Of a DNA stretch of 64,000 nucleotides, positions 8,200 to 61,720 are shown one piece after another. The stretch comes from Octopus sinensis (lineage: Eukaryota): contig NC_043007.1 in NCBI RefSeq assembly GCF_006345805.1, forward strand, positions 28,396,001-28,460,000, read 5' to 3'. Within the stretch, counting starts at the first letter, position 1, and every line of letters begins with the position of its first letter. The notes under the pieces are model-generated. The model saw only the letters and a program-made list of their open reading frames with translations. It made no database searches and was not told the DNA's origin. A program made the translations under genes and the position numbers.

Positions 8200-8655
8200 G
8201 AACCTTGGATCTAGGTTAGAAACTGGTTCTTACTCTATTGGCAAGAAATCTTGAAATAAAATGAATAATGACATACATACAAACATACATGCATGCATAC
8301 ATACATACATACATGCATGCATACATACATACATACATACATGCATGCAATGGTTGGCAGATACTTTCATGTAATGTAATCAAATGAAGTTTATTTTTCA
8401 TCACAGTTCGCTTGCAGTCCACATACATCTTCCATCAGTGTTGCAGTGCTTGGATGAAGAAGTTTTTGTCTTGTTGCTCAAATAAGTAAGCAACAGTAGA
8501 TATGATATCATCATCATTGTGATACTGGTTCCCAGTCAAGTGGGGGTTTTTTTCTTTTTTTTTTTTGGTGTTGGGGAATAGAAGATAGTCAGATGGGGTT
8601 AAATCAGTCGAATAAGGAGGGGAATCAACCAGTTCAAAGCCACAGTTACACACTG
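8200..8655 (-). mobile_element. mariner transposase C-terminal fragment
   Basis: SPPYSTDLTPSDYLLFP matches the mariner YSPDLAPSD motif. Confidence 0.7.
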
Positions 8656-12591: not shown

Positions 12592-15030
12592 TCAGGACTG
12601 ATTTCGAAATTTTTCAATTTCACTCACCATAAAACTGATGGAGTCTGAAGGTTGCTTGTATGCCACATTCATTACCAACTCCTGAATAGAACAAAGAGAA
12701 AGAAAATTCATTTAATACAAAAACAGCTAAAGGAAACTGAAGTAATCATTCATTTCTCACAATTTATTAACATATGCATTGTGTACGTTCTACGAGTACA
12801 TGCGTGGTCACACAGTTTAGGAGTTCACAATCATCAGGTTCGCTGATTGATATCATCAAGTGACACCAGTGTCTTTAACCATAACTTGAGGAAGCTTTGT
12901 GAGTAAAATTGTGTAGAAGGAAACTGTTGGAAAACCAATGGATTGGTTGTAGTTGTATAACAAAGCTAGCTTGTCATACATCGTGTCAAATGATTCTTCC
13001 TGAGTATTACATAAAAGATACAAGTGTTAGTACCCAACCACTAACACTATAATTCAATCAAGAAGAAGTTCAGCTGATTGAACAACTGAATTTCCATCAT
13101 TAAAACCAATATAAGATTTATCATGTCATGGCTGTGTACTACAGAGTGGAAATGAGGAAAGCTTTCACTCCTCATGGCTTTCATTTTCAGCAGAAGTCAG
13201 GGAGAGAAGAATAAGCTCAATGAGGTTTACTTGCTTCCAAAAGAATGTGGAACTTGTTATTATGTGATAGGTTCCAAATACTGGACTGTTGGGTGGAGCA
13301 TTATTCATTCCATAATGACACACCTGAGAGAAGGTGGCCCTCAAGCCATTCAACATTAGGGAGGCTGAAGTCCTCCAGAAGTGTGTGCAGGCTGTTATCC
13401 AGGTTGGTTAATACTTCTTTCATTTTCTGGGGTCTCTCTTCAAATGAGTCCCCATGGTTTGGAGCATCTGGTGGGCGATATGTAGTACATATTACTATTT
13501 TCATCTGTTTAAAGTGTACCATCAGTTTGAGTGTGACAGTAGGACCACAGGCGTGACATCTTCCCAGGTGTACATTGCTACTCCACCATGAGTTCTTTCT
13601 CTCCTATCAGTTCAAAACACTACATACTTCGGTATGTGTATCTGAGCATCTGATACGTCCATGTTCAGATGTGTTTCTGTTAGTGCCATGCATAATACTT
13701 GATTGCATGTCACTAAGTCTCTCATTTACTGGGTTTTGCATTGGTGAGACATTATGAGGGCTCCTGCAGTCCAGAAGGAATACTGGTGTGACATACAGGG
13801 TGCCAGGAGTGGCCACTGTCCTGACATGTACAGGTGTGTTAGAGGCAGCCGTCCTGGATCCTTTATTGTTTGAAGTGGTCTTAAGTGCTGGTATGTGTTT
13901 CTTAGACTTGCTGTCTATTGAAGCCATGTCAGCTGCCTTACAATCCTCTATGCAACCTCCAGCAAAGCTCATTGTTCAGCAGCTGCTGTCTGGACTACAT
14001 CCACGGTTTATTTCCTCTTAGGAGCAGTGCATGTGCCATCCAAACATTCCCATGGTGGTGGCATTGCATCTTCTGCCCTGACCCTGTGTTGTTAGAGGCC
14101 ATTCTCCGTGGTCTTCAGGTGAGTGAAACAAGTATTGCTCACATAGGATTTGGGATGAGCAAATCTACAGCCTATCCCAATGTCCCCATGCCAGCAGGCA
14201 CTTTCTATTCCCCTTTCAGTGAATCCATAAATTGGTGCATTATAAACATAAAAAAGTTATTGGTCCATTGACAGTTTTGGTTGAAGGCTATTCTGTAGAA
14301 TAAAGACAGTTAAGCTTTATTTGTAATAAACAAAAACTATTTTGATAGATTTAGGATTTGGTAAAATTCTAGAATGGAGAGTTACATTTATAATTTGTTT
14401 TCTAGGGAGTGTTTGAAATAATATGAATGCAAAAAGAAAATACCCACACACATATACAGACATGCAAAGACACACACAGACTAACATAGACACAAACAGA
14501 ATTAACATATGGCAAAGTAGGGTTTTCCATTAACAAGTAAAATCTTTTGGATGCAATTCATGGTTTCTATCGACCCGGTTTCATTGACATGACTTGATTC
14601 TATGGTAAATAAGATGTTACACCAGAATTGAACTTAACTTTGTGAAACAAGCATCTTAAACACTCAATTAAACGCGTGGGCGCGCTTGCAGAAATATTTT
14701 TAAAAAGCCAGAAATACAGACAGAGAATGAGGTGGGGTGGGAAAAACACCTCACCTGAAAAAGCGAGAACAAATTATGCTTATATAAATATCTGTTGGCT
14801 TTTTCAAACGGATTTTCTGTCGTGGGAACGGTGTTGCGGACGTAAGTTGATTTAGCAGCGCTATCATTGCTCGACATCTGTATTAATCTGTCAACAGATT
14901 CGATCCCTTGTCCTCCTACACTACTGCTAGTTTCTGTTCTATTTATGGACCATGTTTTGTCGTTATCAGCTCCGTGTTGCAGTGTCTCTGCATCACAAGA
15001 AGACTGCTTCAAGTCACCTTCGTCAGCCAT
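12592..15030 (-). CDS. TEX55: TEX55/C3orf30-like protein with a C-terminal RIIa/Dpy-30-type dimerization-docking domain; 2 exons, 121 aa
   Basis: Exon 1 14755-15030 (MADEG...ENPFEKANRYLYKHNLFSLFQ, donor GTGAGG) and exon 2 12592-12681 (acceptor ttctattcag; ELVMNVAYKQPSDSISFMVSEIEKFRNQS*). The pattern PFE-A-Y-KH-(I/L)F-FQ...(P-D-x-x-FM) resembles the TEX55 C-terminus as I recall it. AATAAA at 12344-12339. An upstream in-frame ATG at 15108 would add 26 hydrophobic residues. Confidence 0.7.
13170..14260 (-). mobile_element. CR1/L2-like LINE 5' portion (ORF1 remnants + endonuclease)
   Basis: ICTTYRPPDAP...LEDFSLPNVEW (degenerate YRPP and GDFNLP-I-W motifs) at 13301-13522. Confidence 0.6.
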
Positions 15031-15313: not shown

Positions 15314-15849
15314 CCAGCAACAGAGTTTTGTTTCGTGTTTTTTTTTTTCCTTTTCCATGTTATTTTGCATGCTTTCAACGGACGTGACATCAAAATCAAG
15401 CGTAAGCAGTTCCTTTCCCCAGAAAAAGGAAATATTTGGCTGCTATTTCTTGCACGCCCTGCTACCACGTAACAGGCATTTCGGGTCCTTTATCGCAAAT
15501 AGCTGTTACATGGTAGCAGGGAGTGCTGGAAATAGCAACCAAATCTTTGGAAGTGAGATATGTTGAATGTACTCGAAATAAGCATACAGAAAAAAGTTAT
15601 TTCACACTGAGGTTACGAACGTATCTTAAAAATTAATTTTAAGATCTGTGATTGAGATGGAATAAATCCCCGGATCTTTTACGAAATATTTATGCCAAAA
15701 AGAATTTTTGTAATGGTATTCACTTGAAAATAATTTTAAAAACCATTAAAATATTGTCAGTTTAAAGAAAGCTAAATATTAATACTTATTGTATAAACAA
15801 CTCACATTTTTGAAATCCCATTCACTTAAAAATATTTCTAAATGATACA

Positions 15850-19473: not shown

Positions 19474-19479
19474 TTTATT
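19474..19479 (-). terminator. Candidate poly(A) signal (AATAAA) for SelL
   Basis: First minus-strand AATAAA I found downstream of the SECIS, about 500 nt after the stop codon. Confidence 0.4.
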
Positions 19480-19898
19480 AAAACAAGCAAATTAAAAAAA
19501 TAAAAATTTGAAGGACTAAATGTAGCAGTTGTAGTTAGCAGCCCTTTATGCAGTGGCAGACTGAGAGTAATAAGGGTCCTCAGGCATAACTGTTCACCAA
19601 GCCCCTTAGCATTGATATCAAAGAGAGTTAACAAGTAGAATGTGGAGCCCTTAGCATTGATATCAAAGAGAGTTAACATGTAGAGTGTGGGCCCTCAGGC
19701 AGTGCCCAATTGACCAACAGCTCAGTCCACCCCTGCTTCTATGTGCATTCAGGAATTCATTTAGAAATAAAAGACATCTGTATTATCAAAATCGATAGTG
19801 TTACCATTGATGATGGTCATGATGTTAACATCCGGTAAAAATAATTACAAATATAGTTGTTAATGTATATAATAAACAAATTAACAATGATCAACTTC

Positions 19899-19977
19899 AA
19901 GACATGCGTTGAGATTTCCAGCCCAAGGTTTCAATGTTAGTGCTTTCATCTGGGGCCTTCATAGATACCACATGCTT
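19899..19977 (-). promoter_or_regulatory. SECIS element candidate (Sec insertion sequence) in the SelL 3'UTR
   Basis: mRNA reads AAGCAUGUG-GUAUCU-AUGAA-GGCCCCAGAUG-AAA-GCACUAACAUUGAAA-CCUUGGGCU-GGAA-AUCUCAA-CGCAUGUCUU. Helix I is 9 bp with one bulge; core AUGA(19962-19959)/GA(19918-19917); 11 nt from AUGAN to the apical AAA; GGCCC/GGGCU helix II. Folded by eye only. Confidence 0.75.
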
Positions 19978-19981
19978 CGTT

Positions 19982-19996
19982 TTACACAGGAAAATT
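19982..19996 (-). CDS. SELENOL: SelL terminal coding exon 10 (NFPV*), followed by the SECIS-bearing 3'UTR
   Basis: Acceptor gatatttcag at 19998-19997, then AAT TTT CCT GTG TAA, directly followed by the SECIS candidate. Confidence 0.72.
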   Translation of the reverse strand, partial: NFPV

Positions 19997-22900: not shown

Positions 22901-25900
22901 GTGATTGTAGAAGACAAACTGAAATGAGAGAATATAATTGGGATAATAGTGTAGAAGAGGAAATAGTAAAGAAGGAGTGATGATGATGATGGAGCAGTAA
23001 TGACAGGGTGTAACAAGAGAGAGAGAGAGAGAGAGAGATTAATATCAGCAGCCGACAGTTTGTTGGTGAGAGCATAAGTGATGGTGGTTTTAAAAATGGG
23101 CAGTGGTAATGAATTCCTCCATTGGGAAGAGGGAATGGTAACTTGCAGTATTAAAGGGTAATGTCTGCTTTTCCATTTTTTGCTTTAGCTAAATGAAATT
23201 TGTTTAGGTGAATATTCAACAGCCAGGTGCCCTTCCTGACACCAACCCTCACTTGTTTCCAAGCACTGAGTATTTCCTCATGTCCAGACAAGTTATTTGA
23301 AAAGTGAAAATTATATCATTTGTATAATGGTGAGATGCTCATTTAGGACCATCATGTGACATCAAGACAAGGATACATACACATAATAGATTTCTTTCAG
23401 TTTCCATCTACCATACCCATTCACAAAGGCTTTGGTCAGCCCAGATCTATAACAAAAGACACTTGCCCAAGGTGACAATCTTGAGTTTAAAATGCAAGCA
23501 GTATTGTGTGTCTGGGTAGGTTGTTTCATTCTACACTCCTCAGTTCCCTTGACTCTTGAGAGCAATCTCACCCATCACTGCACCCATGTGTGATTAATGA
23601 ATAAGAAAAGATTTTGGTATTATGTTATTGGTTGATAAAAAAACAACTGTTGGTCGATTCCATCAAGTACTACTTTTCCATAGCAAAGGTAATAAACTTC
23701 TCCACTGTTTTAATACAGAAAAAATAGTTTCAATATTGAGTATTTCCTTCTCTAAATATTGTCACCATGGCAACAATATCAAATTTTTAATAATCTCAAA
23801 AATTTATAATGATTCAAAGGTTGTCAACAGCAATGAGGTTTACTGACCTTTAAGGTTCCTAAAATTTGCTCAGCAGAAGGTCGATCACTTGGAGTCTGAC
23901 TGCGATAGGTAAACAAGATTTTACCAGTTTGGTCAATGATGAAATCACCACCCATCTAGCAAGAAATAATAAAGTATTTTGGTTTAGGATCAGATTGTAT
24001 CAGGTTTTAATTTTCAGTCAATGCTCAGTGACTCTTAATATCACAAGTTGGGTGTCTGTACAAGTGTACAGTAATCTCTTGACTACCACCGGTGTTACAT
24101 TTGAAAACCTCCCACAGAAATAATTCAAATCTAAAAAAATATAAATACCTATCGACTGCAGAAATCCAGATATACTGAGGAGTTTGCAGTATAAATTTAC
24201 AAATATTAGCCAGAAAAATCCACGATGTACTGAGTGCATGACAAGTGAACCATGATATACTGAGTGCGCAAGAGGTGGACAGTGATATGACGAGGGACTA
24301 CTGTATATAGATTTGTGTGGTTTCTGCGATCCTTCTTCTCATGTAATTTGCATTATTTTGCTCAGATTTTAACATCCAGTCGTAGTCTTAAGTTTACAAT
24401 GGAAATATAAGAACTAAAAGCTATGATTTCCATCCTAAGTTATAATTTCAGAATAAGTTATCATATTTCATCTCACTCATCATCATCATCATCATCGTTT
24501 AACATCAGCTTTCATGCTGGCATGGGTTGGACGGTTTGACTGAGGGCTGGCAAGCCAGAAAGCTGCACTTAGGTTCCAATCCGATCTGGCAATGTTTCTA
24601 CAGCTGGATGCCCTTTCCAACGCCAACCACACTGAGAGTGTAGTGGATGCTTTTTACGTGCCACTGGCATGAGGGCCAGTCAGGTGATACTGGCATTGGC
24701 CACGCTCAAATGGAGCATTTTACATGCCACCAGCACAGGACCAGTCAGCTAGCACTGGCATCAACCACGCTTTAGAGGTGATCATTTAAATAAAATTGAG
24801 TGGTTAGATATTAAAATGTCCTTACTTGGTAAATATCTTCATTGAAATCTTTATATGGAGTTGGGATAATCCCATCAGAAGCCATTTCAGCAGCATAATA
24901 TTGTGTGGTCTTCATACAAAACACCTGTAAATAAATATATTAATATCATCAATTACTTGAGATTACAAATTGTACATTTATGGGAGGAAAATATACCTAG
25001 GTGGGGTTTCATCATAGTCCTCCAGGCAATAACAGAGGAATTCAAGACAGGATGCCCCTGGGAGCTCCTCTATGCTGATGACCTTGCTCTAATTGCTGAA
25101 TCACTATCAGAACTAGAGGGAAAGTTTCAGGTGTGGATGCAAGGATTAGAATCGAAGGCCCTTAGAGTCAACCTAGCTAAATCCAAAGTCTAATAAGTAG
25201 GAAGGCAGACAAACCACAAACCCCTTTCGGTAGATGGTCCTTTATAAAAGACTGGTGACAAAGGGCCTCTCTCTCAGAGTAAAAGGTAGACTGTACAATG
25301 CATATGTGCGAACTGCCATGCTACATGGAAGTGAAACATGGGCTGTGACTGCTGAGGACATGTGTAAGCTTGCAAGAAACGAAATCAGTATGTTCCACTG
25401 AATGTGTAATGTCAGCGTGAATACACGACAGAGTGTAAGTGCCCTGAGAGAAAAGATGGACTTAAGAAGCATCAGATGTGGTGTGCAAGTGAGATGACTA
25501 TGCTGGTATGGTCATATGTTGCGAATTAATGAGGACAGCTGTGTGTAAAAGTGTCACACCCTAGCAGTTGAGGGAGCCTGTGGAAGAGGTAGACCCAGGA
25601 AAACCTGGGATGAGGTGGTGAAGCATGACCTTCGAACATTGGGCCTTACCAAGGCAATAGAGATATGCTGTGCTTGAGAAGACCCAACAAGCCAAGTGAT
25701 ACCATAGCCCATGGTCTATGCCAGTGGGTGTAACCAGCCCATTTATGAATACCCCTCATTCATTGGATAATAAACCTTGCTTGCAAAGACCTGTTGAAGC
25801 AAGTGAAATCAAAATCAAAATTGCTGATGTGGCCGACGACAGTAGCGCTTGATTGGCACTCGTGCCAGTGGAATGTTAAAAGCACATCAGAGTGTGACCA

Positions 25901-26506: not shown

Positions 26507-26782
26507 AAAGAGTATAATATAAATATCTTACTTCCTTGACAGATCTACGTAATCCAAGAGCAGAGTAAATCTAGAAAAAAACAAAACAAAATTTGTGATT
26601 AAGTGACAGAAAGTTACTAGCAAGATTACCCCCACCTCACGTATATATATATACATACATACACACATGCAGATCTATACACACACACATCTATATAGAC
26701 ATACACACATACACACATATACATACTCTCACATACATAAACATATATACACATATAAACACACACATATACATACACCCAC

Positions 26783-26862: not shown

Positions 26863-29800
26863 CACACACATATGCATACAACTCCCCCCCCACACACACA
26901 CGTATATATGATGGCTGCCCAGTCGTGACCAAGGAAGACCATTGCTAACCTTCAGGAACATTGTGCAGTCGAGGACTAGCTTATATTTTGCATTTACGGA
27001 TCCATTGGTGGCTAATAAGCCCTGCTCTTGACAAGGATACACAGGTGCAAACACTGCAGACCAAGCTTTCCCCATTCACTAAGGAGAGCTGTGTGAAGAA
27101 GTGCCACACCCAAACAGTGGAAGGAACCCGTGGCAGAGGGAGACCCAGGAAGACATGTAATGAGGCGGTGAAGCATGACCTTCAAATGTTGGGTATCACA
27201 GAGGCAATGATGAAAGACCGAGACCTCTAGAGATATGCTGTGACTGAGAAGACCTGACAAATTAAGTGAGACCACAGCTGTAGCCTATGCCAGTGTCGCA
27301 TAACCAGTCACTTAACAAAAGTACCTTTCGATTGTAGGGCGACATGCTGTGCTTGGGGAGACCTATTGAATGAAGAACATCAACATCAAATCAAATGGAA
27401 ATTATAGTTGTGGCTGATGCCAGCGACACCTCTCTGTGCCAGTGACACGTAAAAAGCACCATCCAAACGTGGCGGGTGCCAGCCCTCTCTGGCCCCTGTG
27501 CCAGTGGCACATAAAAAGCACCCATTACACACAGAGTGGTTGGCGTTAGGAAGGGCATCCTGCTGTAGAAACACTGCCAGATCAGATTGGAGCCTGGTGC
27601 ATTCCCTTGGTTTCTTAGACCCCAGTTGAACTGTCCAACCCATGCCAGCATGGAGAACAGATGGTAAATGATGATGACGATGATTACACTTTAAATTCTC
27701 AATATTAAGGAATCTGCTTTATATATTCTACACATCTCAAATCATGTCTTGGAAATTTATACTAAACTGCTTTCTTATATTTTCTCATTTTTCGTATATT
27801 TTGATTCATTTCATGCTATATTTATGTATTGAATTATGCTTATTATATATTCTCTCGTTTTATTATTATTTTATTCTGTTTCAGTTCACCTTTTACTTGC
27901 TATTCTACTTTATCCTTTACATTACCTTATTTTACTTTATTCCATTATACTATTTTTAACTAATTTTTAATTATTTTTTTAATTCCTATAATATTATTTG
28001 CATAGTGACTATCTACCACTCACATTCTTTATTATTTTCCTAATTTTTTAATTAGAATCCTTATTTTATTATTATCCATTTGCTTTCATAACCCCTTTTA
28101 ATGTAAACTCCTTTATTTATCTAATGATGGCCACTCTTCTTATTTCATGCCCTCCCCCCATCGTATTATCAGATTTATCATCTCCTTAATGATCCTTCCA
28201 GCCTTAAAGGGGGTATATAGAGGGCTGTTAAGTGTATAAATAACTGGGTAACCTTAGCCTTTGTACTTAGTGCTAAAACTGCTTGTTGAATAGAATTAAA
28301 AGATAAAAGAAACTAATTTGATCATAGTTGTAGGGGGGAGATGCCTCACTATCTGATTGCCCCCTACTCCATCCACTAACCTCCTCTATTACTATAAATC
28401 TTCATTACCCACTACCCATGCATGACATTGCATTATTTTCTCCTATAATACTACCAAACTAAACAAATTAATTCTATGACCAGCAAGGGTTGTAGAATCA
28501 TGAAGGTGCACATCTCCAACCCACTGCCCTCTAAACAACAACTGTCTCAGAAAAGAAATTGTATACAAGGCCAAGGTCATGGATCCCAATGGAGTAGCAA
28601 AGACAGACAGAATGATGGGCAACTCATTCAAGAAGAGGTACACACAATAGCTGGCATCATTCAGAGACAAATAAAAGACACATAACATCCCTCTCCAATA
28701 ATGATATGGACATTGAAACAAGGTGGAATAAGTAAACCCCAGATAAAATGGAACATCATTGCTAAAGTCGGAAAATACAGAAGATGCAGTACCAAATGTG
28801 AACTCTGTATCACTGAAAAATTAAATATCATACAGTCAACAATTAACATTCTAAATATTAGGGGTGAAATCTCCTTGCATACATGAGCAATATTTTACTA
28901 TCAAACATTTCAAAGAAGAAACACTACCTGTGCTGCTAATCCCATCAGGATATCTCCTTTCCTGAATGTGAAATTTAAATATACATAATACATGAACTTC
29001 ACACACAGAAGGAACATGCCCCTATGAAGGACTACCTTGCTACACAAGCATATGAACATCACATACAACTAGAATATACTATATGATAATGCAAACAAAT
29101 TTACCATCCAACACAATTGTTGGCCCAAAAGTCAAACCTAAGAGAGACAACCACTTAAAAGATGTCATCCAAGAGTAGCATCTCATGATTTATTTATGAG
29201 AATCTCTGTGAATCTTCCCTCATGTGAAGCGGAATGTGGATTTACCTCTATGTAACAGAACTGGTAATGTAATTACATGGTTTTGTTCAATTCAAAATAA
29301 AAGAAAAATCCTGTTTTATACAATTCGACAATGATAATTATTAACAGTTAATATCTCTGAATCTTTTACATACGGCATTGGCATTTGAAAATAGATTTAA
29401 GAACATTTCACTTTTGGAAAAAGGGATAATCCAAACTGCCAGAAAAACATTAATTTCGTATAATGAAAAATATTGGACCCGTAGTGATATCCCAGATAAT
29501 TTCGATGTTACGATGGGATCTTCTCATTCCACCTAAATCACTGACATTGTTGGGCTATTCTTATTATCAATTATTAAGGAGAAATTTCCAAATATTAGCA
29601 GGGGATTATATAGAGATGACGCTTTATTTGTCATTTTGAACTTTCCCTTACGAAAAATTGATAGGAGTAGGAAACAATTAATTAGGGTCTTTAAGGGATA
29701 TAATTTAAATATCACTTCTGAAAACAGGTGTCTAAGATTGCAAATGTTTTAGACATTATCCTGAACTCGGAAAATGGCCTATTCTATCCTTATTTAAAGG

Positions 29801-31659: not shown

Positions 31660-34600
31660 CATTGTAGCTCACTTGAAGCATTGTAGTAGAGAAGTAGAAA
31701 ATGAAAGAAAAGAGAAATAAGGAAAGCTTCTAATGATGCAGAGTTTTCAAAAGGTAAAAAAAGGCCTATCTTAAAAAGGAAGCAATCAAAGATCTGTGCA
31801 TTTGCATAGATTTTGTTATTTTCAACTGTTCAGCATTTGGGTTAGCAGCAGCAACTCTCCAACTGTTGGTAATATTTAGAATTCAACATTTCTGAAAAAT
31901 ATTTTAAAATGTCTCACATTTTTTGAAGAATCTTGAAAAGAAGGAAAAGAAGATTTTGTTTCTGCCAACCACTGCTTTATAGACTTCTGTGATCCAAAGA
32001 AAAGAAGTAGAACATCGCAGCCTAAAGCTTTCAAATCTGACTGCAAAATGAAATAAAACTGTGTCAGTCATTTTATCAATTTAAGTATTTAGGGAAATAA
32101 GGTGGAGAAAAGAACCAACATTTTTTAGGGTTAATAGTAAATTTAAATATCTTTTCAAATATTTCTTATATTAATGGCAGCTTAGCAGTTCTGAATAGAT
32201 ATCTTTAACTTCTTAGAAATATTGTTTATAATCTGGAAGGGTATATTCTGAGCAATGCAAGTGAAAAGTTAGGCAAAATATGTAAAATGACATCAATAAA
32301 TAAAAACCATAGAAAATATATTGTATAACTTTACATAGGTTGTTTAATACTTTTATAATATTTTGGGAAGCATTCCTCTTATCAAATAAGGGAAAGAAAA
32401 TAATCCATGAATTTAGAGCGAAGTGTTGTTACTGGCAGAGGCCATTTTGGTATGTTGGATCACAAGAAGGTTAACAGACAAAGAAGACCGTTTAAACCAG
32501 CCATATGGGCCGGCCCAAATATTCTAGATGGTTTATATTCAAACTGGCGATATCTAGCCTCTAACCTAAATTGACATTCTAAAAATAAACAATCACATCA
32601 TTGAAACTTCAAAGCTATAAGATAATGCATGATTAATTCAAAACCATTTGAGTGAAAAAGTATTACATTTAACAGAGTAATGTGAACACTAAACGGTTAA
32701 TATGCAACAGATGCAGAGGAGCAAAAACTAAAAACATAAAAGAGAGAAATTTTCTGAAATGCACAGATGGTTCTCTGGAGGCAGGCAATAGTTTCTATTA
32801 CCTATGTGATCTTATTAGCAATGGAGGAAAATTTTCTGCAAGTATAGATTCTAGAACAGAACCAGCTGGAGAAAGTGCTGTTGTGACTACTAGTTACTGC
32901 CACATTTGATGGTTACCACTGCCATTAGCCTGTCTGTAACCTATATATACATAAATACAGGATCACATGTAGGTTAACATGTAAAAACGCATGTTACATA
33001 ACATTTCTGCAGAAGAAAGTGAGACAACAAAAATGATGACTAGAGTTATCGTAGACTGGGGGGGGGGGAGAAGAAACAAGCTTACCTTCCAAGTTTCTAG
33101 CTCCATTACATGTTTACGTCAGGGTAGTCATGCAAAATGGCGCTGGAGAACAAGTAGTAAATAAGGAGAAGTGAAAACTGGGAGTAATTTGTCCAGAGTT
33201 ACTGAATTTCCCTCTAGTACATCAACAACTGTTAGTTGCTGGGATAAATAATCTCCAACCTCAAGTGTTTTAGTTTTCCCATGGGACTCACCATGGAGAG
33301 CAGTATCTACAGTGTGAAGAAACTGATCCCATTCTATCTGTAAAAGAATACAAACCAAAAGAGAATATTAAAGAAGATTGGCTAGGCACGAATTAGCCAA
33401 TTACAGAAGAAATGTAGGTGTGGCTCTTGAGGAGATGTGTAAATGTTTTAGGTTTGAATTGAGGCTTCCACCTCTTGTGTAACTTGCTAGTCTTGAAGTA
33501 ATTTCATGAGGTAAAGAAAATGTTTGATTAGCAGATGACTGCATACATATCCAAATATATACATAAATTGTAGGTTTTGTTAAAGAGGGTCTAATATATA
33601 TCCTCTTATACAAAATCAACTGTATAATTAGCTAGCTGTAAAAGAACAATTATTACAGCAGTAATGGAAATTGACAAATTTTGTCAAAGCAATATCAGCC
33701 ATGAAGATGATAGGTCTATATACACACACACACACACATATATAGAGAGAGTTTTTCTTCTCCTAGATGGGTTGCCATCACCATGGGTAAGGAGTCTCAT
33801 CTGCCCCATACATATATATACACACACGAAAAAAAGTAAAAATATGAGATTTAAGAATATATATATAAGATATGTAAAAGCAATATATACATATGTACAC
33901 CCATTTTTGTTGGATGACCATTGATTAGTCCTCCACCCTTTGACAGGTTTTGTTTTTTCGTCCACAGGGTGTCCAATAAACACCCTCTTCACAAAGCAAG
34001 TTAAGTGGGGTTGCCAATTTAGTCGCTGATGACTCGACTATGCAATAGGATGTGCTAGGTTACATGTTACCAGTAGCGCCTGAGTGTGACCTGACATATG
34101 CAACTTCTCTTTCGCTAATTCCCAACAGTAAGGTCAATTGGAAGGGGCCACTCTTGCACTTCAAAGACAAAGTAAAAGACAATCTGAAGCAAATCAATAT
34201 TCCCTTTTCTTTCTGGGAAAGCAAAGCATCAGAACACAGGACCCGGTACCAGTCCTGCTTCTACTCAGTTCAAAGATCTGGGCAAAATCGACTCCAACAT
34301 TGGGACCAACTTTGTACAAACATGAAGACACGCTAGCAAAATGCTGCTCCTCTCAATGGAAACCTTACCTATCATTGTGGTTTTGTGGCACAGCAGAATC
34401 ACTACCAGAACTAGAAAAGAAATTTCAGGTGTGAAAGCAAAGTTTAGAATCAAAAGGGCTTAGAGTCAATATTGCAAAAACCAAAGTCCTAGTAAGTAGG
34501 AAGGTGAACACACCACAAACTCCATCAGGTAGATGGCTCTGCTCAATCTCTAGAAAAGATGTACTCCATAAGATGTACCCAGTGTAAGCTATGTATGCAT

Positions 34601-37600
34601 AAGAGGTGCAGCAACATCAAAGGAAGGTCAACCAGGATGATAGCTTTTGTGTGCGTCAGATGCACAGGGACAATAAACACTGCAGATGCTCAGAAAACAG
34701 ACTCCATCACATGCCAGGGAGAGAAAGTAGTAGTAGTTGACAGCTTCTGCTACCTAGGTGACCAAGTCTGTAGTGTGGGGTGGAAGGCTCGGAGAGTGTT
34801 GCTTCTAGAATAAGAAAAGCCTGAACAAAGTTCAGAAAGCTCCTATCTCTACTGGTGACAAAGGGCCTCTCACTCAGAGTGAAAGGTAGATTGTATGATG
34901 CATGTGTGCAAACTGCCATGCTTTACAGCAGTGAAACATGGGCTGGGACTGCTGAAGACATGTGTAAGCTTGAAAGAAATGAAGCTAGCATGATCCGCTG
35001 GATGTGTAATGTCAGTGTGCATATACGACAGAGTGTAAGCACCCTGAGAGAAATGTTGGATATAAGAAGCATCAGATGTAGTATGCAAGAGAGACGACTG
35101 CACTGGTCATGTGCTGCGTATGGATGAGGAGAGCTGTGTGAAGAAGTGTCACTCCCTAACAATGGAAGGAACCCGTGGAAGAGGTAGACCCAGGAAGACA
35201 TGGGATGAGATGGTGAAGCACAACCTTCAAATGTTGGGTATCACAGAGGCAATGATGAAAGACCAAGACCTCTGGAGATATGCTGTGATTGAGAAGACCC
35301 AGCAAGTAATGTGAGATCAAAGCCATAGCCTATACCAGTGGTGCAAACCAGCCCTTTTAAAAAGTACCTTTTAATCGTCGGGCAACATGCCATGCTTGAG
35401 GAGATCTATTGAGCCAAGTAAAATCAAAATCAAAGCTCAATCAAAAATGGAAATTGTAGTTGTGGCTGATGCCAGTGCTGCCTGACTGGCTCTTGTGCTG
35501 GTGGCATGCGATGAGCACCATTCATGTGTGGGTCATTGGCAGTGTCGCCTGACTGGATCAGATTCGAGCCTGGTGCAGCCTCCTGGCTTGCCAGTTCCCA
35601 GTCAAAGCGTCCAACCCATGCCAGCATGGAAAACGGATGCTAAACGATGATGATGAAGCAGAGCAAGCCTTGCTGTTCACTCAAGAAAAGACACAGTAAA
35701 TAATCCACAAGCACTGAAGCAAACTGAGTCCTCAACACTTGTCCCATTTGCCGAAAGGCTTGCAAGGCACCAGCAGACCTCAAGAGACACATTCGTGCCC
35801 ATAGAACATTTTATTTTATTAACACAATATTTTACTGAACCCACATCTATCGTTCATGACAAGAGAATCCGTCATATATATACATACTTTAGTTGTGGAT
35901 TAACAAGGCTACTAATGGTAGCCACAGGAATATTGGTATTTGTCTCCATTTTGGATGAGAATACAAGATTTTGAGGAAGATAATATACATATTATAGTGC
36001 ACCTGAGCACTGTACACAATTATTATTATTATTATATCACGGGACGTAACTTGTAAGGAAATCTTAGTTGTTGCCTCCCCTGCATTAGCCCTGGGATATT
36101 CACAAGGAACTGCATGTTTTGTATGGATGTGCATGTACACATATACGTAATGTTTTTTTATAAATTTGGATGTGCACAAGCGTTCTCACATAAAATGATT
36201 CAAGAAGGGAGACAGGAATTAAGATTTCTTTATAAGTTACTTTCCATGATCTGTATATTTATTCATCCTGAAATTCCACACAGTCTCGTTTTTCCAAAAT
36301 GGGGATGAGCACTAGCGTTTCCATGTGACAGGCTCGAAAATTGATAAGAGATTTCTTTTTACGTGAAATCATTGGTAGCCTTCTTAACCCACAGATAAAG
36401 ATTTATTGACTAGTGTTGAACACTCATTATCACTGTTTGATATTAGCGTGTATGTATGTGTGTGTGCATAGATATAACAACATGAAGTATGCATACAAAT
36501 GAGTTAAATACGCAAACAACGAGACAAAAAAAAAACATGGAAAATAGGACAAGTAACACAAAGAACGACCCTTCATCAGTTGTTGACTGTCTATCTGCTC
36601 CTCATTCAACGGCAATATGAATCTTCGAAGACAGTTGCTTCCATAAATTCCAAAATAAAATTTTGGATTTATGGAGGCTCAAAGTTGGGAACAAAAACAG
36701 GACAGTGAAGACATACAAGGAAACTTAATGAAAACAAACATGGAGGGTCATTAGACCAGAACGAGAGGAAAATAGTAAATGCTGGATGAAATATTTTCTT
36801 TGAAAAGGGAAAAGATAGATGTCCAGTCCTTAGAAAGTCGTGCAGGAAAAGAAAGATGGATGATAGTCACGTGTGAGCAACGAGAGAGAGAAACTTACTT
36901 AGAAATGGATGCGTGGTATTCAATGAAATAATAATATAAATTCATCATCATCATCATCATCGTTTAACGTCCGCTTTCCATGCTAGCATGGGTTGGACGG
37001 TTCAACTGGGGTCTGGGAAGCCCGAAGGCTGCACCAGGCCAGTCAGATGTGGCAGTGTTTCTACAGCTGGATGCCCTTCCTAACGCCAACCACTCCGAGA
37101 GTGTAGTGGGTGATTTTATGTGCCACCGACACAGGTGCCAGACGAGGCTGGCAGACGGCCACGCTCGGATGGTGTTTTTTATGTGCCACCAACACAGGTG
37201 CCAGACGAGGCTGGCAGACGGCCACGCTCGGATGGTGTTTTTTATGTGCCACCGACACAGGTGCCAGACGAGGCTGGCAGACGGCCACGCTCGGATGGTG
37301 TTTTTTATGTGCCACCGACACAGGTGCCAGACGAGGCTGGCAGACGGCCACGCTCGGATGGTGTTTTCTTATGTGTCACCGACACAGGTGCTAGACGAGG
37401 CTGGCGGACGGCCACGCTCGGATGGTGTTTGTTACGTGCCCTCAGCACGGAAGCCAGTCATTGCGGTACTGGCTACGGTCACGTTCGGATGGTTTTCTTA
37501 TGTGCCACCGGCACTGGCACCACAAGGATACAAATTCCATTGATGTTCATCTATTTTGATTTGGTTCGATTTGATTTGATACGATTCGATTCGATTCTCA

Positions 37601-39329
37601 CTTGCCTCAACAGGTCTTCACAAGTGTCACAAGAAGGAAGGTATGCACAGGTGGACTGACTACGTCCCAGGTAGGGGCCACGGATTATGGCTTCACTAGT
37701 CTTGCGGGTCTTCTCACGCACAGCATACTTCCATAGGTCTCGGTCTCTAGTCATTTCCATGGTGAGACCTAACGTCCGAAGGTCGTGCTTCACCACCTCG
37801 TCCCAGGTTTTCCTGGGTCTACCTCTTCCACGGGTTCCCTCAACTGCTACGGATTGGCACTTTCTCACACACCTCTCTTCATCCATTCTCGCCACATATA
37901 TATTAGTAAAATTAAAAAAATGTTAAAGAAATGCTACAAAAATGTCATGCATTACCTCAAATTCAATGAGATTATTTGCCAGCTCTTTTACAGAAGAATT
38001 TCTAAAACAAACAAAAATATTGACATTTCAAATGAAGAAATTTGATTCATCATTTTTGATTACTTTCACCAACTTTAAGGCAGGGTGTAGTGCGGTGGGG
38101 TGGAGTATTGGTATGGTGCAGCGGGGGTGAAGTGTAGTTGACAGGGAACATTGACAATTGTGTTAGCTGAGGAAAGGGGCACTAATGATTTCTGGCCCAT
38201 AACTCTGAGCTCAGAATTTAAGATTTTGGCCATGGTACATGGTGCTTGTTAGTAATGTGGTTAGGAGCATGTAGATGTGCAGGATTCCTGGCAGATCTAT
38301 TCACAACCATCTCTTTCCTCAAGCAATACATCCCAAAGTAGATGACTATTAACCCTTTTGTTAACAACCCGACTGAAACCACCACTTGCTCTGAAGTACA
38401 AATGTCTCATTTTCATAAATCTTCCACCAAACTTTAGTCACAATTTATGTTTCTAACACTAGCTTAATGATAACTAAGTTATTTGACTAAATTCTCAGTT
38501 ATATTTAAAATTAATTGAAAGAAACACAGAGCATCTCAAAATAAATACGATAATGAAAGGGTTAAATATGGTTTTTATGAAGCTCTGATCCATTCGGATC
38601 AATCCAAAGCTTTAGACAAATTTGCCTATCAGTATTCAGTGCAACTAGTTTTGATTTTGTTTGTAGGTTGGGTCCCTTCAATGTCAAGAAGCTTTTTTGT
38701 TCTGTAACCAGACTAAATGGCCACTGGTCAAAACCATTTCAAATCTCATGCTTAATCCATGTCCTTTCACATTGCTCCTACATATTTTATCTCACGAGCC
38801 AGTGTTGCAGAAGAGGTGTTGAGGGGCATCCCATTTCATCTAGGATACAAGAAGGCTGTGTCAATGTATGCAGACAACATCACCACAGAAATCATGCTGG
38901 TCAGCACCACACTGAAGGAATAGGAAGGAGTAACACGAGGAAGCATTAATTAGTGGGTTTGCAATTCAGTAGCTTTCATCCCTCCTGCATCAAGCACTGG
39001 AACTGGAGGTGTTAACTAATCCCTCCCCTCAAAACAGCTGACCTTATGCCAAAGAAATCACTGTTAGAGTGGTGTGTGAGAGAATTCTTTATTTAGTTGT
39101 ATCTCTTTACATTCTGAGTTCAAATCCTGCTGTAGTCAACTCTATATTTCATCCTTTCAGAGTAAATAAAATACCCAACAGCTATGATTGAATTAACTAA
39201 AAACCCTTCACAAAAGTTGTGGCTTTGTACCAAAGTCAGATATTAATTTCAAGGACTTGTAAAATCAATAACACTAGACAAAGTATTTAAGTCCCTTCAT
39301 GTTTTGTTGATTTGGGTAAATAGCGAAGA

Positions 39330-39360
<31 letters not shown>

Positions 39361-42300
39361 ATAATAATAATAATGTTCTTGAATTGTCTCTAACTAACAC
39401 CATGCCAGTATGGAAAATGGACGTTAAATGATGATAACCCCTACACATTTCGGGTTAATGTAAGAATTCATCATCATTATTATTATTATAGCGTGCTCTT
39501 AGTGGGATCCACTCTGTTGTAAATATTTAAACTAGGGCCCCAGCTTAACTTCTTACTAGTGTTAAAATCTCTAGACCTAAATGGAAAATGAGATTGAAAA
39601 GCTGAGCTGGGCTGGAACTAATCCTATTCCTCTTTGGTGTTTGATTGGTGAAAAGGTGTTAGTATAGTTTTGTTAGCCAGAGACTATCATCTTGGACAAG
39701 GACACCCTCTGAATCGCATCCAATATTTACTGAGATTATTCCTCTGCTATCCAGCCAATCTACTACGAGGGGAATTCCAGAGTTTTGAGACTTTTTTTAA
39801 GAGAGGCAGTTATAACTGTCCTAGATTATTGTAATTTTGGTCTCTCATCACTACTTCATATATCTAATAAGCTGACCTGCCAACTCTTTTTTTAATTTTT
39901 ATTCCAGATTGAAGAAGTTGGAGAGTTTGATAAGATCTTGTTTGATAACAACACTTTGAACACACTCCACCAAACATTGCTTGTTACAGGTGACTAGTTT
40001 GCAGAATGCAATCAGGATGTAAATAAATCTGGAAGCTTGCTATGCAAACTGGGGACGGATGAACACGCACACACACATACACTACAGAAACTTATGAAAC
40101 TCTTCAGACTGCTTATGGATTAACTTGTCTGAGACGAGCATCTGTTTTATGCCAGAACAAGAGGTTCAAGGACAATAGAGAGGAGGTGAGTGACAATAAG
40201 AGGTGCAAGAAAGAAAGGAACATCAGAACTAGTTGAGAAAATTCACAATTTTTTGCATGAAGGCCCAAGTATTTTTATCATCATTAGAGTGTACTGGGTG
40301 CTTCTTTACAAGGTGCCAGCACAGGCACTATTTTATGTGGTGCCAGCACAGGTGATTTTTTACAAGATACCAGTATGGGAACTTTTTTATGAAGTGCTTA
40401 TGCGGCACCAGTACAGGTGCATTTTACATGGCAGCAGCACCCATGAAGTTGTGACTTGGCTACCCCAGTAGGACAAGGAAGTGTTGAGGCAGAAGCATAA
40501 GCTCCTCCACCTACACCCACCTCAATGTGGCAACTATACACAGAATTATTTATGAAGGTCTGAGCATGTGCAAAGTTTGTTCTCAGGGTGCTCAATGATG
40601 AACAGAAGGAAAGATGCATTGGTAACAGCAGGGAGATCGTTGAGCTCATTACTGCCAATCCAAGTGTACTTTTGAGTCTCTCATGACTTGTGAAAAAAGC
40701 TGGATCTGTTATGATCCAGAGACAAGGAGACAGTACCTAATGGAAGTATCCTGACCCTGCCAGACACAAGAAGGTCAAGCAAAGCATGTCCACTAGGAAG
40801 CTCGTGGTAGCCCATTTTTTCAACAGCAAGGGCATCATTTATATACACTGGGTCCACTCTGGTCAGATAGTCAACAAAGAGCACTTTGTGGAGGTTCTGA
40901 GAGAGTTGAGGAAAAAATTTCATCACAAAAGGGTCAGAGCTCTTCCACTTGGGTCAGTGGCCCCTGCACCAGGACAATACATCAGTCCATGATTCCATTC
41001 TGATTACTAACTACTTGATAAATATTGGTATCAGAACTGTCCTTCACCTTCCCTGCAGTCCAAACGTTGTTCCCTGTGACTTTTGATTGTTTCACAAGCT
41101 GAAGGAAAACCTCAGGGCTAGTTGTTTTGAAGATATTGAGATGAAGAAAGCTGTGACAAGGGTCCTGGGCACGTTCACTTTGGAGGATCTCCACCAGGCT
41201 TTCCTAAAATGACTCCTCGAATGCTACAATAAGAGCATTGAAGTCAGACAATCCTACTTTGAAGGAGATTAGAATTTTGTACTTCTTCTGGAATGAACCC
41301 CATATACTTTATCAATTCCTGAAGAATGAAAGGCCAAGGCAGTATTTGAACTGATGAAGTCATCATTTCTAACAGCTTTACCACTAGATAAAACAACCCA
41401 CAATATAATTTAGTTAAAATTATTTACCTGAAATGCTTTCCTAGCTGTAAATCCAGTTCCTTTCGATTTTGAGAGCCAATGCTGTTGTAAATTCAGTAAA
41501 ACAGGAAGATGTAAATAAAAAATGTTTTGTTAGATAAAAAAAGAATTTCAAACATTAAATATTATCACCACCATCATTACTATTATATACATCTACATTT
41601 TGTCCTCCTATTATAATAGAGCAGGAATATTTTTTGTTACAAACTCAAACTTCTATATATCATTAGAGAAATAGTTTTAAAATAAGTTCCCTTCTTATAG
41701 CAAACTAGTCATACATGATGTAGGAATTGTACCTGGGAAAAATAAGGAGACAAACAGTTTTATGGGTTCATCCTTAGAACAACCAAAAGTCTTTTGCTAC
41801 TGTTTTTTGTGACTTCAGTTAAATAATAGACAGATGCATTGAGTTATATTGAAATTGAAAAATTAAGTTTAATTTTCAGATGTCATTTTTGCAACAACAA
41901 TGTCACACTGCATCACCTTAACTGTTTACACTGCAATGTGAGTTTCAAATTTTGGCACAAGGTTAGCAATTTTGAGGGAGGAAGGAAGTCAATGACATCA
42001 CCCCCCCCCCCAGGGCCCAACTGATAATTATTTCACTGACTCCAAGAGGGTGAAAGGCAAAGCTGACACTGGCAGAATTTGAACTCAAAATATAAAGACA
42101 AACAAAATACTTGGCATCATTTTGTCTGGCATGCTAACAATTCTTCCAAATCACCTCTTGTTTATAAGACATATTAGGGAAGTTAACACTATAGATGATT
42201 TGGGAGGGGGTGATTTCTTCACACTAACATTGGTTGGATTTTTTAACTAAGTCTTTCAAAGTCACTTTTTTTCTCTACATTTAACAGGTTCTCACCCACA

Positions 42301-44162
42301 TGACTTTTTATCCATAGAATTATGTTTGGGTAGTTTAACTGTCAAATAAAGGACATTCTTGACCTAATAAGGTTCCTGTGCTGATCATAAGGTCTATATC
42401 ACAACACATTTACTACATAATCACTATATTAAACACTGAGTTAATGTCATCTTATGCTTTCAGAAATTCATCTTGCAAATATTGAATTTGAATACCTTAC
42501 CTTCTAAACAGTGTATTGTATGTTTTGGCGAGCTGAAACATTTTCCCCACTTTTGAAGAAATGAAATTTTCAAGACTGTCTGAAAAACACAAATTATATA
42601 AAGAAAAGTTAAATAGGGGTTTTACAAGCACATAAGGGCAAGACAAACAAATCACAGTTTTTCAAGCTCACAAATGCAGGTGCCATGAAAAAACACTCAG
42701 TGCATTCTGTATAATGGTTGTCTGGCAGTATAAACCATTCTCAAGCACTGAATGCTACACAGTCCTCTGACCTTTCAGATCTTATCAAACTCTCCAACTA
42801 ATGACAGCAAGTAAGAAGCTGATGGTGATATGCTATTTGATTTTTATTGAGGAAGAGACTCAAGGAAAATAGAAAGCAAAGACAATCTGGGCAGGATTCA
42901 AACATAAATCATTCTATTGATTTTGGCACTAATATGTTAATTATTTAGGTTCAAAGTCAATTGAAGTTGACTACATCGAATACAGTGTATAACTGGTGCT
43001 GCATATATCAACCTTAGTGTACCTTCCTGTTCCTTACTGATTATAAATTCCACTGATCTTAAACATTAAGATTGTAGAATTACTAAAATCCTAGCTTATG
43101 GAGCAATACGTATAGTAAAGAACGTTTCAAAGAAGGTACAACATTGGTAACATCAGTAATGCCGCCAAGGTCAGTGCTTGGGTACTCAGCACTTTCGATC
43201 AGCCCTACAATGTACACTACCAACTTCTTCAATAACACCTTCCAACTATCTTCACTACACCAGCAGGAAATTGCAGTTCAAAAATTATAAGCGATAAAAA
43301 AAAAAATCAATAAGTTTTATGATCAAGCACACCATGGAGTAAATTTGTAACTAGGCAAAATTTGAAATATTTCACACCAAATCGTGTGGCATAAAACCAC
43401 ACAAGCCTCTCGCCCCCCTCCATCCCTCAACCCATGTTGTCCAATCTTCTTTATTCCAAGAGTGCTCACATGTTCTTATTAAGTTGTTATTAACTGGATT
43501 AAAAAATTTTGTGTAAGTTATTTGAGTGCTGCAGGTGATCGTCCATTCAATAGAACCGGCTCTCGAGCGCCCAACATCTTTGCAGTATTTAGTTACCATT
43601 ATAATGTAATAGACGAACATATGCAAGCTGTGTACAAAAACTGTCCTGCAAAATGGAAACAGCAAACTGAATTTATTTACGCTTATATTTCACTGCACAA
43701 ATGTAAGAGATGAAATATGTAAAGAAAACTAGTTTTTTCTTTCCATTTACATTCTGTGATCAAATCTAGACGAGGTCACCCGTTCCTTTCATCCTTCTGA
43801 AGTGGATATTAAATATGCAACCAGTCAAGTATAAGGTCAATTGGGCGATTCTTACGTTAAATAGCCGACCAATTTGCACACCTCATACTCCTACTTTCTT
43901 CAAAAAGGAAGATGTATTAGAAAACGGTAAAACTAAGAAGCGACTTGGAATGCCTTTCATCATCTGCTCAATTCGGGCAAAACTGGGGTTAAACAGCAGA
44001 ATTAAATATCATACCTTTCCTGTTAAATTCTGCAATGCCATCTTCAAGAATGATTTTACCGTGTTTCAAGAATTCTCCAAGTGCAGCGGAAATATTTGAG
44101 GTGAAATCAGAATTTGATGCAAACGATTCTGACGTTTGACCTCGACATGTGTCGTTGGCCAT
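19982..44162 (-). CDS. SELENOL: Selenoprotein L (UxxU diselenide, PRXL2/AhpC-TSA-like thioredoxin fold), 10 coding exons, 320 aa
   Basis: Exons 44015-44162, 42501-42579, 41428-41481, 37956-38001, 33086-33337, 31918-32040, 26532-26570, 24826-24924, 23848-23955 and 19982-19996 join with GT-AG introns and compatible phases into 963 nt. Translation: MANDTCRGQTSESFASNSDFTSNISAALGEFLKHGKIILEDGIAEFNRKDSLENFISSKVGKMFQLAKTYNTLFRSIGSQNRKELDLQLGKHFRNSSVKELANNLIEFEIEWDQFLHTVDTALHGESHGKTKTLEVGDYLSQQLTVVDVLEGNSVTLDKLLPVFTSPYLLLVLQRHFAULPURKHVMELETWKSDLKALGCDVLLLFFGSQKSIKQWLAETKSSFPSFQDSSKNIYSALGLRRSVKEVFCMKTTQYYAAEMASDGIIPTPYKDFNEDIYQMGGDFIIDQTGKILFTYRSQTPSDRPSAEQILGTLKNFPV*. The RHFxUxxU motif, the C-terminal Q-MGGDF-x-D...G...S...DRP motif and the helical N-terminal domain match my recollection of SelL. 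Confidence 0.92.
22302..22655 (-). mobile_element. Young RTE 3'UTR copy with ~3 units of a 63-bp tandem repeat
   Basis: (CAT)n tail on the plus strand; near-identical to 36943-37180 and 52238-52410. Confidence 0.8.
23848..23955 (-). CDS. SELENOL: SelL coding exon 9
   Basis: Acceptor ttcttgctag; MGGDFIIDQTGKILFTYRSQTPSDRPSAEQILGTLK; donor AAG|GTCAGT. Confidence 0.9.
24826..24924 (-). CDS. SELENOL: SelL coding exon 8
   Basis: Acceptor ttatttacag; VFCMKTTQYYAAEMASDGIIPTPYKDFNEDIYQ; donor GTAAGG. Confidence 0.88.
25010..26234 (+). mobile_element. 5'-truncated RTE LINE (RT C-terminus + 3'UTR + (GAT)n)
   Basis: [29 protein letters not shown] and GRGRPRKTWDEVVKHDL, followed by the shared 3'UTR. 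Confidence 0.88.
26476..26910. repeat. Compound (TA)n/(CA)n microsatellite tracts flanking SelL exon 7
   Basis: (TA)n at about 26476-26503 and a mixed TA/CA tract at about 26640-26910; these produce the spurious YI/HT-rich ORFs. Confidence 0.9.
26532..26570 (-). CDS. SELENOL: SelL coding exon 7
   Basis: Acceptor ttttttctag; IYSALGLRRSVKE (the family's Y..LGL motif); donor GTAAGA. Confidence 0.88.
27060..27685 (+). mobile_element. 5'-truncated RTE LINE 3' end
   Basis: VEGTRGRGRPRKT...KHDLQMLG, 3'UTR and (GAT)n. Confidence 0.8.
28555..31620 (+). mobile_element. Penelope-like element remnants (GIY-YIG endonuclease and RT C-terminus; probably two partial copies)
   Basis: IKWNIIAK...KCELCITEKLNII...LNIRGE (28701-28886); FYPYLK...IQYINILSNH, IIWFTPP and STLKFSY (about 29750-30340); LEGQCL...VVYK...YTGST..FK.RY...CRLCLKE (about 30480-30730); ends at a (TA)n tract near 31625. 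Confidence 0.75.
31147..31229 (+). ncRNA. Type I hammerhead ribozyme motif associated with the Penelope-like element
   Basis: Stem I TATCT/AGATA; CTGATGA (31152-31158); stem II AGGAAATGCA/TGTATTCCCT with an extended internal hairpin; GAAA (31213-31216); near-palindromic stem III TGATCG; GTA cleavage triplet ending at 31224. Confidence 0.75.
31918..32040 (-). CDS. SELENOL: SelL coding exon 6
   Basis: Acceptor cattttgcag; SDLKALGCDVLLLFFGSQKSIKQWLAETKSSFPSFQDSSKN; donor GTGAGA. Confidence 0.88.
32488..32696. mobile_element. 209-bp MITE-like element
   Basis: Terminal CCGTTTA...TAAACGG, with TTAA on the right flank only. Confidence 0.4.
33086..33337 (-). CDS. SELENOL: SelL coding exon 5, carrying the UxxU motif (TGA at 33130-33128 and 33121-33119)
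   Basis: Acceptor ttcttttacag; 84 codons, phase 0 at both ends; IEWDQFL...LLLVLQRHFA-TGA-CTA-CCC-TGA-RKHVMELETWK; donor GTAAGC. Confidence 0.93.
34340..35655 (+). mobile_element. 5'-truncated RTE LINE
   Basis: [25 protein letters not shown] and RGRGRPRKTWDE, then 3'UTR and (GAT)n. Confidence 0.88.
36943..37895 (-). mobile_element. RTE LINE 3' end with an expanded 63-bp VNTR in its 3'UTR
   Basis: RTE C-terminal ORF at 37551-37895 (GRGRPRKTWDEVVKHDL); units start at 37118, 37181, 37244, 37307 and 37371, then diverge; (CAT)n tail. Confidence 0.88.
37118..37433. repeat. 63-bp minisatellite, 5 near-identical copies
   Basis: Unit atgtgccaccgacacaggtgccagacgaggctggcagacggccacgctcggatggtgtttttt; contiguous, with no unique spacers. 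Confidence 0.92.
37956..38001 (-). CDS. SELENOL: SelL coding exon 4
   Basis: Acceptor tttgttttag; (R)NSSVKELANNLIEFE; donor GTAATG. Confidence 0.8.
38353..38561. mobile_element. piggyBac-like MITE (209 bp)
   Basis: TTAA on both flanks (38349-38352 and 38562-38565); TIR CCCTTTTGTTA vs CCCTTTCATTA. Confidence 0.65.
40540..41271 (+). mobile_element. mariner (DD34D-type) transposase remnant
   Basis: YDPETRRQ, FFNSKGIIY..W...GQIVNKE.F, LHQDN and a degenerate YSPDLAP.DF region, ending YFEGD*. Confidence 0.8.
41428..41481 (-). CDS. SELENOL: SelL coding exon 3
   Basis: Acceptor tttacaacag; (S)IGSQNRKELDLQLGKHF; donor GTAAAT; phases fit both neighbours. Confidence 0.75.
42501..42579 (-). CDS. SELENOL: SelL coding exon 2
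   Basis: Acceptor gtgtttttcag; (D)SLENFISSKVGKMFQLAKTYNTLFR; donor GTAAGG. Confidence 0.85.
44015..44162 (-). CDS. SELENOL: SelL coding exon 1
   Basis: ATG at 44162; MANDTC...EFNRK+G; donor GTATGA (phase 1). Confidence 0.8.

Positions 44163-46383: not shown

Positions 46384-61720
<15,337 letters not shown>

Follow-up and report, generated by a model that had tools for sequence, protein, structure and literature searches.

Do two TGA codons in the frame of a single octopus exon end a protein, mark a dead gene or encode selenocysteine (Sec)? The question is raised by a 252-nt exon on the minus strand of a 64,000-nt stretch of Octopus sinensis DNA (C11:28396001-28460000 of the 2.72-Gb genome), which we call the window and in whose coordinates all positions below are given. 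An initial annotation of the window had assigned this exon to a ten-exon gene for selenoprotein L (SelL/SELENOL). Our analysis indicates that the locus is very probably an intact, single-copy octopus orthologue of SelL, in which both UGAs would be read as Sec.

A ten-exon gene with two internal TGA codons

The exon (33337-33086, minus strand) opens with ATAGAATGG directly after ...ttttacag and closes with ACTTGGAAG directly before gtaagc. Its sole open frame begins with IEWDQFLHTVD and gives IEWDQFLHTVDTALHGESHGKTKTLEVGDYLSQQLTVVDVLEGNSVTLDKLLPVFTSPYLLLVLQRHFA-TGA-LP-TGA-RKHVMELETWK as product; both alternative frames are rich in stops, and the frame used has just the two TGAs as stops. The 252-nt exon with strong splice sites and two TGAs that the initial annotation described was recovered in full, with AG and GT at its borders. 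The genome holds one copy of this exon, with both TGAs inside it.

Joining the exon, the fifth of the gene, to nine others gave a coding sequence of 963 nt, or 320 codons followed by TAA, whose only internal stops are the two TGAs at residues 179 and 182 (U179 and U182). The gene extends over ~24 kb of the minus strand, all introns are of the GT-AG type with a pyrimidine tract, and 18 of 18 splice sites are canonical. All exon borders could be fixed, because two annotated proteins of Octopus vulgaris cover both halves of the product. P0002 (178 aa, "hypothetical predicted protein"), retrieved by a word-indexed protein search, is 97% identical to the octopus product and ends ...LLLVLQRHFA just before the first TGA. 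P0004 (134 aa, MELETWK...GTLKNFPV), retrieved by an exhaustive HMMER search, begins at a Met four codons past the second TGA. The ten-exon structure running from 44162 to 19982, with its 320 residues and its two internal stops, held to the base, and the 97-98% identity to the O. vulgaris proteins agrees with the earlier attribution of the DNA to a mollusc, probably an octopus. A segment at 31096-30998 (FFPQQLCDLGNKY...), which had the appearance of an exon from its open reading frame (ORF), was rejected as part of the gene because P0004 places exons 7 and 8 at 26570-26532 and 24924-24826.

Identity of the encoded protein

With the full protein as query, Pfam reported AhpC-TSA_2 at residues 189-300 (58.6 bits) and AhpC-TSA at residues 151-256 (36.4 bits). 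Exon 5 alone had no Pfam match, nor did the N-terminal ~140 residues, a region that is common to animal SelL. BLASTP aligned the octopus product with Betta splendens selenoprotein L over 290 of its 320 residues (34% identity, E 2e-52). The two proteins have identical Pfam architecture and their motifs are in register, with RHFA-U-LP-U-RKH in the octopus and RHFG-U-LA-U-RDH in Betta. A match of this strength to a fish selenoprotein L, with the motifs in register, excludes a chance origin of the gene model. Fish proteins named selenoprotein L carry LLLVLIRHFG-U-LA-U-RDHV, where the retrieved sequences display U as C. The octopus query also matched a coelacanth record named selenoprotein L, which stops at ...LLRHFA.

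In a maximum-likelihood tree, the octopus protein grouped with UxxU proteins of invertebrates, with fish proteins named SelL and with a fish paralogue that has CxxC at the motif, in a clade with support 99/98. Short CxxC proteins, which are unnamed and whose identity as PRXL2 is unconfirmed, fell outside the SelL clade of this tree, which contains no named PRXL2 sequence. The proposed SelL identity is borne out by both the match to named fish SelL and the common clade. A family profile compared with PDB sequences identified prostamide/prostaglandin F synthase (PRXL2B, 9us9; E 8e-9), whose RRFGCVVCR aligns column by column with RHFA-U-LP-U-R; the TGAs accordingly fall at the CxxC position of PRXL2/AhpC-like proteins, as had been claimed. 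In PDB entry 9usa, a deposited double mutant, Ser occupies both of the columns that match U179 and U182. The octopus gene is an ordinary member of the already known SelL family and leaves the understanding of that family unchanged. Among the papers that we could consult, none described SelL in a cephalopod.

Conservation of the two TGA codons

Two checks proposed with the initial annotation, conservation of the TGAs in other cephalopods and a ratio of nonsynonymous to synonymous substitution rates (dN/dS) that is not elevated downstream of them, both came out in favour of a coding role. Argonauta hians belongs to a different octopod family and has counterparts of 10 of the 10 exons. Its orthologous exon reads CAC TTT GCC TGA CTT CCC TGA CGT AAA CAT GTG ATG at the motif, so that both TGAs are kept and four neighbouring codons differ synonymously from those of the octopus. 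Both TGAs are likewise unchanged in O. vulgaris. Between octopus and Argonauta, dN/dS by the Nei-Gojobori method was 0.17 over the 150 codons upstream of U179 and 0.29 over the 134 codons downstream of U182, so that the downstream part is under purifying selection, and dN was ~0.25 on either side of the motif. Because the downstream ratio is this low and dN is equal upstream and downstream, the sequence past the TGAs is constrained as protein.

Homologues were counted among the best 150 of 243 HMMER matches. In 59 of these 150 the sequence terminates precisely with ...LLRHFA, as a truncation at a TGA would produce; nine read WxxW at the motif and 18 read CxxC, the latter being mostly short proteins together with fish paralogues. 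Three WxxW proteins were traced to their contigs, and in all three cases there is a TGA for each W ("with_TGA=W"). The corresponding transcripts, from public RNA data, are intronless and have an element resembling a selenocysteine insertion sequence (SECIS) in each 3' untranslated region (UTR), 0-430 nt past the stop codon (L001, 1733-1790; L002, 1035-1099; L005, 1414-1468). One of these elements is of the GUGA type; Rfam reported one of the three, and a loosened custom pattern scan reported all three. The octopus genome itself contains tRNA-Sec genes with anticodon TCA, identified with Rfam and ARAGORN (77.7 bits, Rfam cut-off 47).

A SECIS-like element next to the stop codon

The 3' UTR of the octopus gene contains a stem-loop whose unconstrained minimum free energy (MFE) fold has the layout of a SECIS: helix I, an internal loop with AUGA and GA, helix II and an apical loop. 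Helix I pairs 19979-19969 with 19908-19898. The AUGA quartet (19962-19959) lies 20 nt past the stop codon, the apical AAA (19946-19944) comes 12 nt after AUGA, and the 3' GA is at 19918-19917. Further along, AATAAA signals lie at 19479, 19215 and 19069. The Argonauta 3' UTR has the same element in the same place, with identical core AUGA, AAA and GGA, and five helix positions differ between octopus and Argonauta on one side with pairing kept (e.g. C-G to U-G). When 7 kb of the two loci were compared, the only collinear conserved blocks were exon 9 and the last exon with the SECIS-like element; three other matches, short and repeat-like, were inverted or displaced in order.

The custom SECIS pattern scan missed the octopus and Argonauta elements even after loosening, because the internal loop below the quartet is outside its model. 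Its best match in the window, at 6617-6574, was rejected as a SECIS because of its fold, which is not that of a SECIS, and its distance of 13 kb from the stop codon on the downstream side.

A model for decoding and function

In the mechanism that we propose, a single mRNA would be made from the ten exons, and one SECIS just after the TAA would recruit the Sec insertion machinery. With the SECIS ~446 nt downstream of the first UGA and ~437 nt downstream of the second, the tRNA-Sec machinery would then read both as Sec. U179-L-P-U182 would begin the first helix of a thioredoxin fold of the PRXL2 type, at the catalytic CxxC position. If the protein behaves like fish SelL, its two Sec residues may cycle between the diselenol and an intramolecular diselenide and so form a redox centre of very low potential. 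The UxxU motif of fish SelL is reported to form such a diselenide reversibly (PMC2397514, PMC12822975, PMC13134290).

Evidence against the model and rival explanations

Several observations weigh against an octopus SelL with Sec at both positions, and most of them concern the SECIS. The octopus element does not surpass shuffled sequence in fold energy (z = 0.13), and its helix II consists of just 7 standard pairs and a C-U mismatch. Rfam SECIS_1 aligned over its full length at 19971-19906 in a 151-nt scan with 14.1 bits (E 3.9), against a gathering score of 35; at the orthologous Argonauta site the full-length alignment scored 30.5 bits (E 1.3e-4), also under the gathering score. Rfam scans of long stretches, covering the whole window at the gathering threshold and positions 1-24100 at E up to 10, returned no SECIS. 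Covariation is weak, with zero pairs changed on both sides and two lineages only. We regard the octopus SECIS as probably present and conserved but degenerate, and as the weakest link of the argument. Beyond the SECIS, the proposed diselenide chemistry is carried over from published work on fish SelL, and splicing and Sec insertion were both inferred from sequence alone.

If the public annotations were right, translation would terminate at the first TGA with a 178-aa product, and the AhpC-TSA_2 part would be an independent protein of 134 aa that starts from the Met four codons past the second TGA. Products of exactly this type are called in O. vulgaris and Argonauta, and the weakness of the octopus SECIS makes some termination at UGA1 plausible. 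However, the 134-aa piece would be missing the redox motif and the fold's first strand, and it has neither its own promoter nor its own 5' exon. In three species the reading frame runs through both TGAs without a break, transcripts of full-length homologues carry one ORF that extends across the motif, and each Cys paralogue of fish is a single, unbroken protein, so we consider two separate proteins very unlikely. It is also exceedingly improbable that the locus is a decaying pseudogene with the TGAs as nonsense mutations. Two in-frame stops and introns full of retroelement debris would fit such decay, whereas the TGA positions are identical in Argonauta and are occupied by TGA in distant animal homologues as well. 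The gene has zero further stops or frameshifts and canonical sites at 18 of 18 splice junction ends, dN/dS is far below 1 on either side of the motif, and the genome copy is unique. Since both TGAs are conserved and the sequence downstream is under purifying selection, the pseudogene explanation is refuted as far as sequence analysis allows.

The UGAs might also be decoded as something other than Sec, either by adenosine-to-inosine (A-to-I) editing of UGA to UGG (Trp) or by near-cognate read-through giving Trp, Cys or Arg. Heavy mRNA editing is established in coleoid cephalopods. Nothing direct speaks for such decoding, and the W found at both positions in databases is there only because callers used a TGA=W code. 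Against it, SelL is a documented UxxU selenoprotein (PMC2397514, PMC12822975), a conserved SECIS-like element sits at the stop codon and tRNA-Sec genes are present. Moreover, Trp is no substitute for a redox Cys or Sec, and the same TGAs are kept in non-cephalopod homologues without heavy editing. We therefore judge non-Sec decoding highly improbable. Because the SECIS of the octopus is much more degenerate than that of Argonauta, and the lineage is one with heavy A-to-I mRNA editing, a regulated three-way switch is conceivable, if decidedly unlikely: depending on selenium supply or editing level, the gene might yield full-length diselenide SelL, a 178-aa N-terminal product ending at UGA1 or an edited, inactive Trp isoform. 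A full-length SelL with Sec at both UGAs remains the explanation that we favour.

Misannotation of the locus and its significance

In the annotations of O. vulgaris and Argonauta hians, the locus is divided between a gene that stops at the first TGA and another that starts from the Met after the second TGA. This two-gene split bears out the expectation that automated annotation would truncate or split the gene. Gene callers take the first UGA as a stop, and the locus is therefore divided into two unrelated hypothetical proteins. UniRef A0A0L8FTW6, which from its accession we take to be from O. bimaculoides, is a 134-aa C-terminal fragment of identical length, and the record of a bivalve, Mactra antiquata, likewise breaks off at the motif. 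Misannotation of selenoproteins is widespread and well documented (PMC12822975). Our results place SelL in cephalopods, and apparently in bivalves, so that molluscs join the aquatic animals known to have this protein, the only diselenide redox protein described so far. They correct a real annotation error and offer a cephalopod model in which SelL function can be tested.

Gene features, introns and neighbouring genes

Table 1. Positions of the octopus SelL exons, putative Sec codons and SECIS-like element in the window
Feature	Coordinates	Strand	Evidence and remarks
Exon 1	44015..44162	-	ATG 44162-44160; MANDTC...EFNRK + 1 nt; donor G followed by gtatga; agrees with O. vulgaris P0002 N-terminus
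Exon 2 (DSLENFISSKVGKMFQLAKTYNTLFR)	42501..42579	-	Borders ttttcag (5') and gtaagg (3'); Argonauta orthologous exon
Exon 3 (SIGSQNRKELDLQLGKHFR)	41428..41481	-	Splice model; Argonauta counterpart
Exon 4 (NSSVKELANNLIEFE)	37956..38001	-	Splice model; Argonauta counterpart
Exon 5, UxxU redox motif ...LLLVLQRHFA-U-LP-U-RKHV...	33086..33337	-	Translation, splice borders
TGA codon, residue 179 (first putative Sec)	33128..33130	-	Same in O. vulgaris and Argonauta; aligns with first Cys of PRXL2B CxxC
TGA codon, residue 182 (second putative Sec)	33119..33121	-	Same in O. vulgaris and Argonauta; aligns with second Cys of PRXL2B CxxC
Exon 6 (SDLKALGCDVLLLFFGSQKSIKQWLAETKSSFPSFQDSSKN)	31918..32040	-	Agrees with O. 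vulgaris P0004
Exon 7 (IYSALGLRRSVKE)	26532..26570	-	Agrees with P0004; Argonauta orthologue 79% identical
Exon 8 (VFCMKTTQYYAAEMASDGIIPTPYKDFNEDIYQ)	24826..24924	-	Splice model; Argonauta comparison
Exon 9 (MGGDFIIDQTGKILFTYRSQTPSDRPSAEQILGTLK), family motifs QMGGDF and DRP	23848..23955	-	Splice model, family alignment
Last exon, coding start (NFPV, then TAA 19984-19982)	19982..19996	-	P0004 ends ...GTLKNFPV; 3' UTR runs on downstream
SECIS-like stem-loop, 3' UTR	19898..19979	-	MFE fold, Rfam SECIS_1 alignment, Argonauta conservation

The introns of SelL are packed with repeated ORF debris that looks like retroelements and with tandem repeats encoding AWPSASLVWHLCRWHIKN, at 37922-37554 (minus strand), 27000-27230, 25549-25707 and 35066-35374 (plus strand), 37368-36967 and 22754-22329. 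The length of the introns can be attributed to this repeat and retroelement debris.

Upstream of SelL, ~2.2 kb from its exon 1, a divergent ORF at 46384-46632 (plus strand) presumably encodes the N-terminus of a SEC23 (COPII) homologue. The Argonauta gene has the same upstream neighbour, with Pfam Sec23 domains, so that the SelL-SEC23 pair is syntenic. On the other side, 12595-12711 (minus strand) is 56% identical at the protein level to part of a 167-aa gene downstream of Argonauta SelL (L006, 29055-29886), which suggests a conserved downstream neighbour there. Long, near-perfect hairpins were found at 15438-15540, 8270-8350, 8084-8155 and 3330-3421, where unrelated microRNA models scored far below threshold on both strands. 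These hairpins probably derive from inverted repeats or transposons, not from microRNA genes.

Comparison with known systems

The PRXL2 family (PRXL2B 9us9, PRXL2A and PRXL2C/AAED1) belongs to the same AhpC-TSA_2 thioredoxin-fold subfamily as the octopus protein and has a CxxC that aligns with UxxU. PRXL2 proteins differ in their length of ~200-230 aa, in the absence of the N-terminal region and in the use of Cys in place of Sec, and the similarity is at profile level only. The octopus protein has TGA and not Cys codons at the motif, a length of 320 aa and the ~140-residue SelL N-terminal region, and so does not fit PRXL2A, PRXL2B or PRXL2C.

SelL is known from fish and aquatic invertebrates (Shchedrina et al. 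2007, as cited in PMC2397514, PMC3316567 and PMC12822975). A survey that reports it from fish, sponge, placozoan, cnidarian, annelid, amphioxus and tunicate genomes did not find it in the gastropod Lottia (PMC3473315). The octopus gene resembles SelL in having two Sec codons two residues apart, within the motif hhhhh-R-H-F-[AG]-U-x-x-U-R-x-H, and an N-terminal extension followed by the AhpC-TSA_2 thioredoxin fold with W217, QMGGDF and DRP conserved. It would also share the use of one SECIS for two UGAs, the octopus element being SECIS-like and weak in score. The inner motif residues are L-P in the octopus, whereas those of fish SelL are L-A or L-L, and in contrast to known SelL the octopus SECIS abuts the stop codon and is degenerate.

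Records of fish SelL are themselves uneven at the motif. Several of them (among P0168, P0206, P0210, P0191 and P0207) skip the UxxU stretch, including Lates japonicus "AAED1", Xyrichtys and spotted gar, and two records named selenoprotein L show C..S at the motif in place of the two Sec.

The fish CxxC paralogue (P0008, P0015 and P0172, named "prostamide/prostaglandin F synthase-like" or "uncharacterized") has the same length, N-terminal region and domain as the octopus protein and is 27-31% identical to it, but has Cys at both positions (QF[AS]CLxCR). In the tree it is the sister of named selenoprotein L (P0191, P0207 and P0208), and it occurs in ray-finned fishes. This looks like a fish-specific duplication after which one copy converted Sec to Cys. 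Because the CxxC paralogue is a fish-specific sister of SelL, the octopus gene would be a co-orthologue that predates the duplication and has kept Sec.

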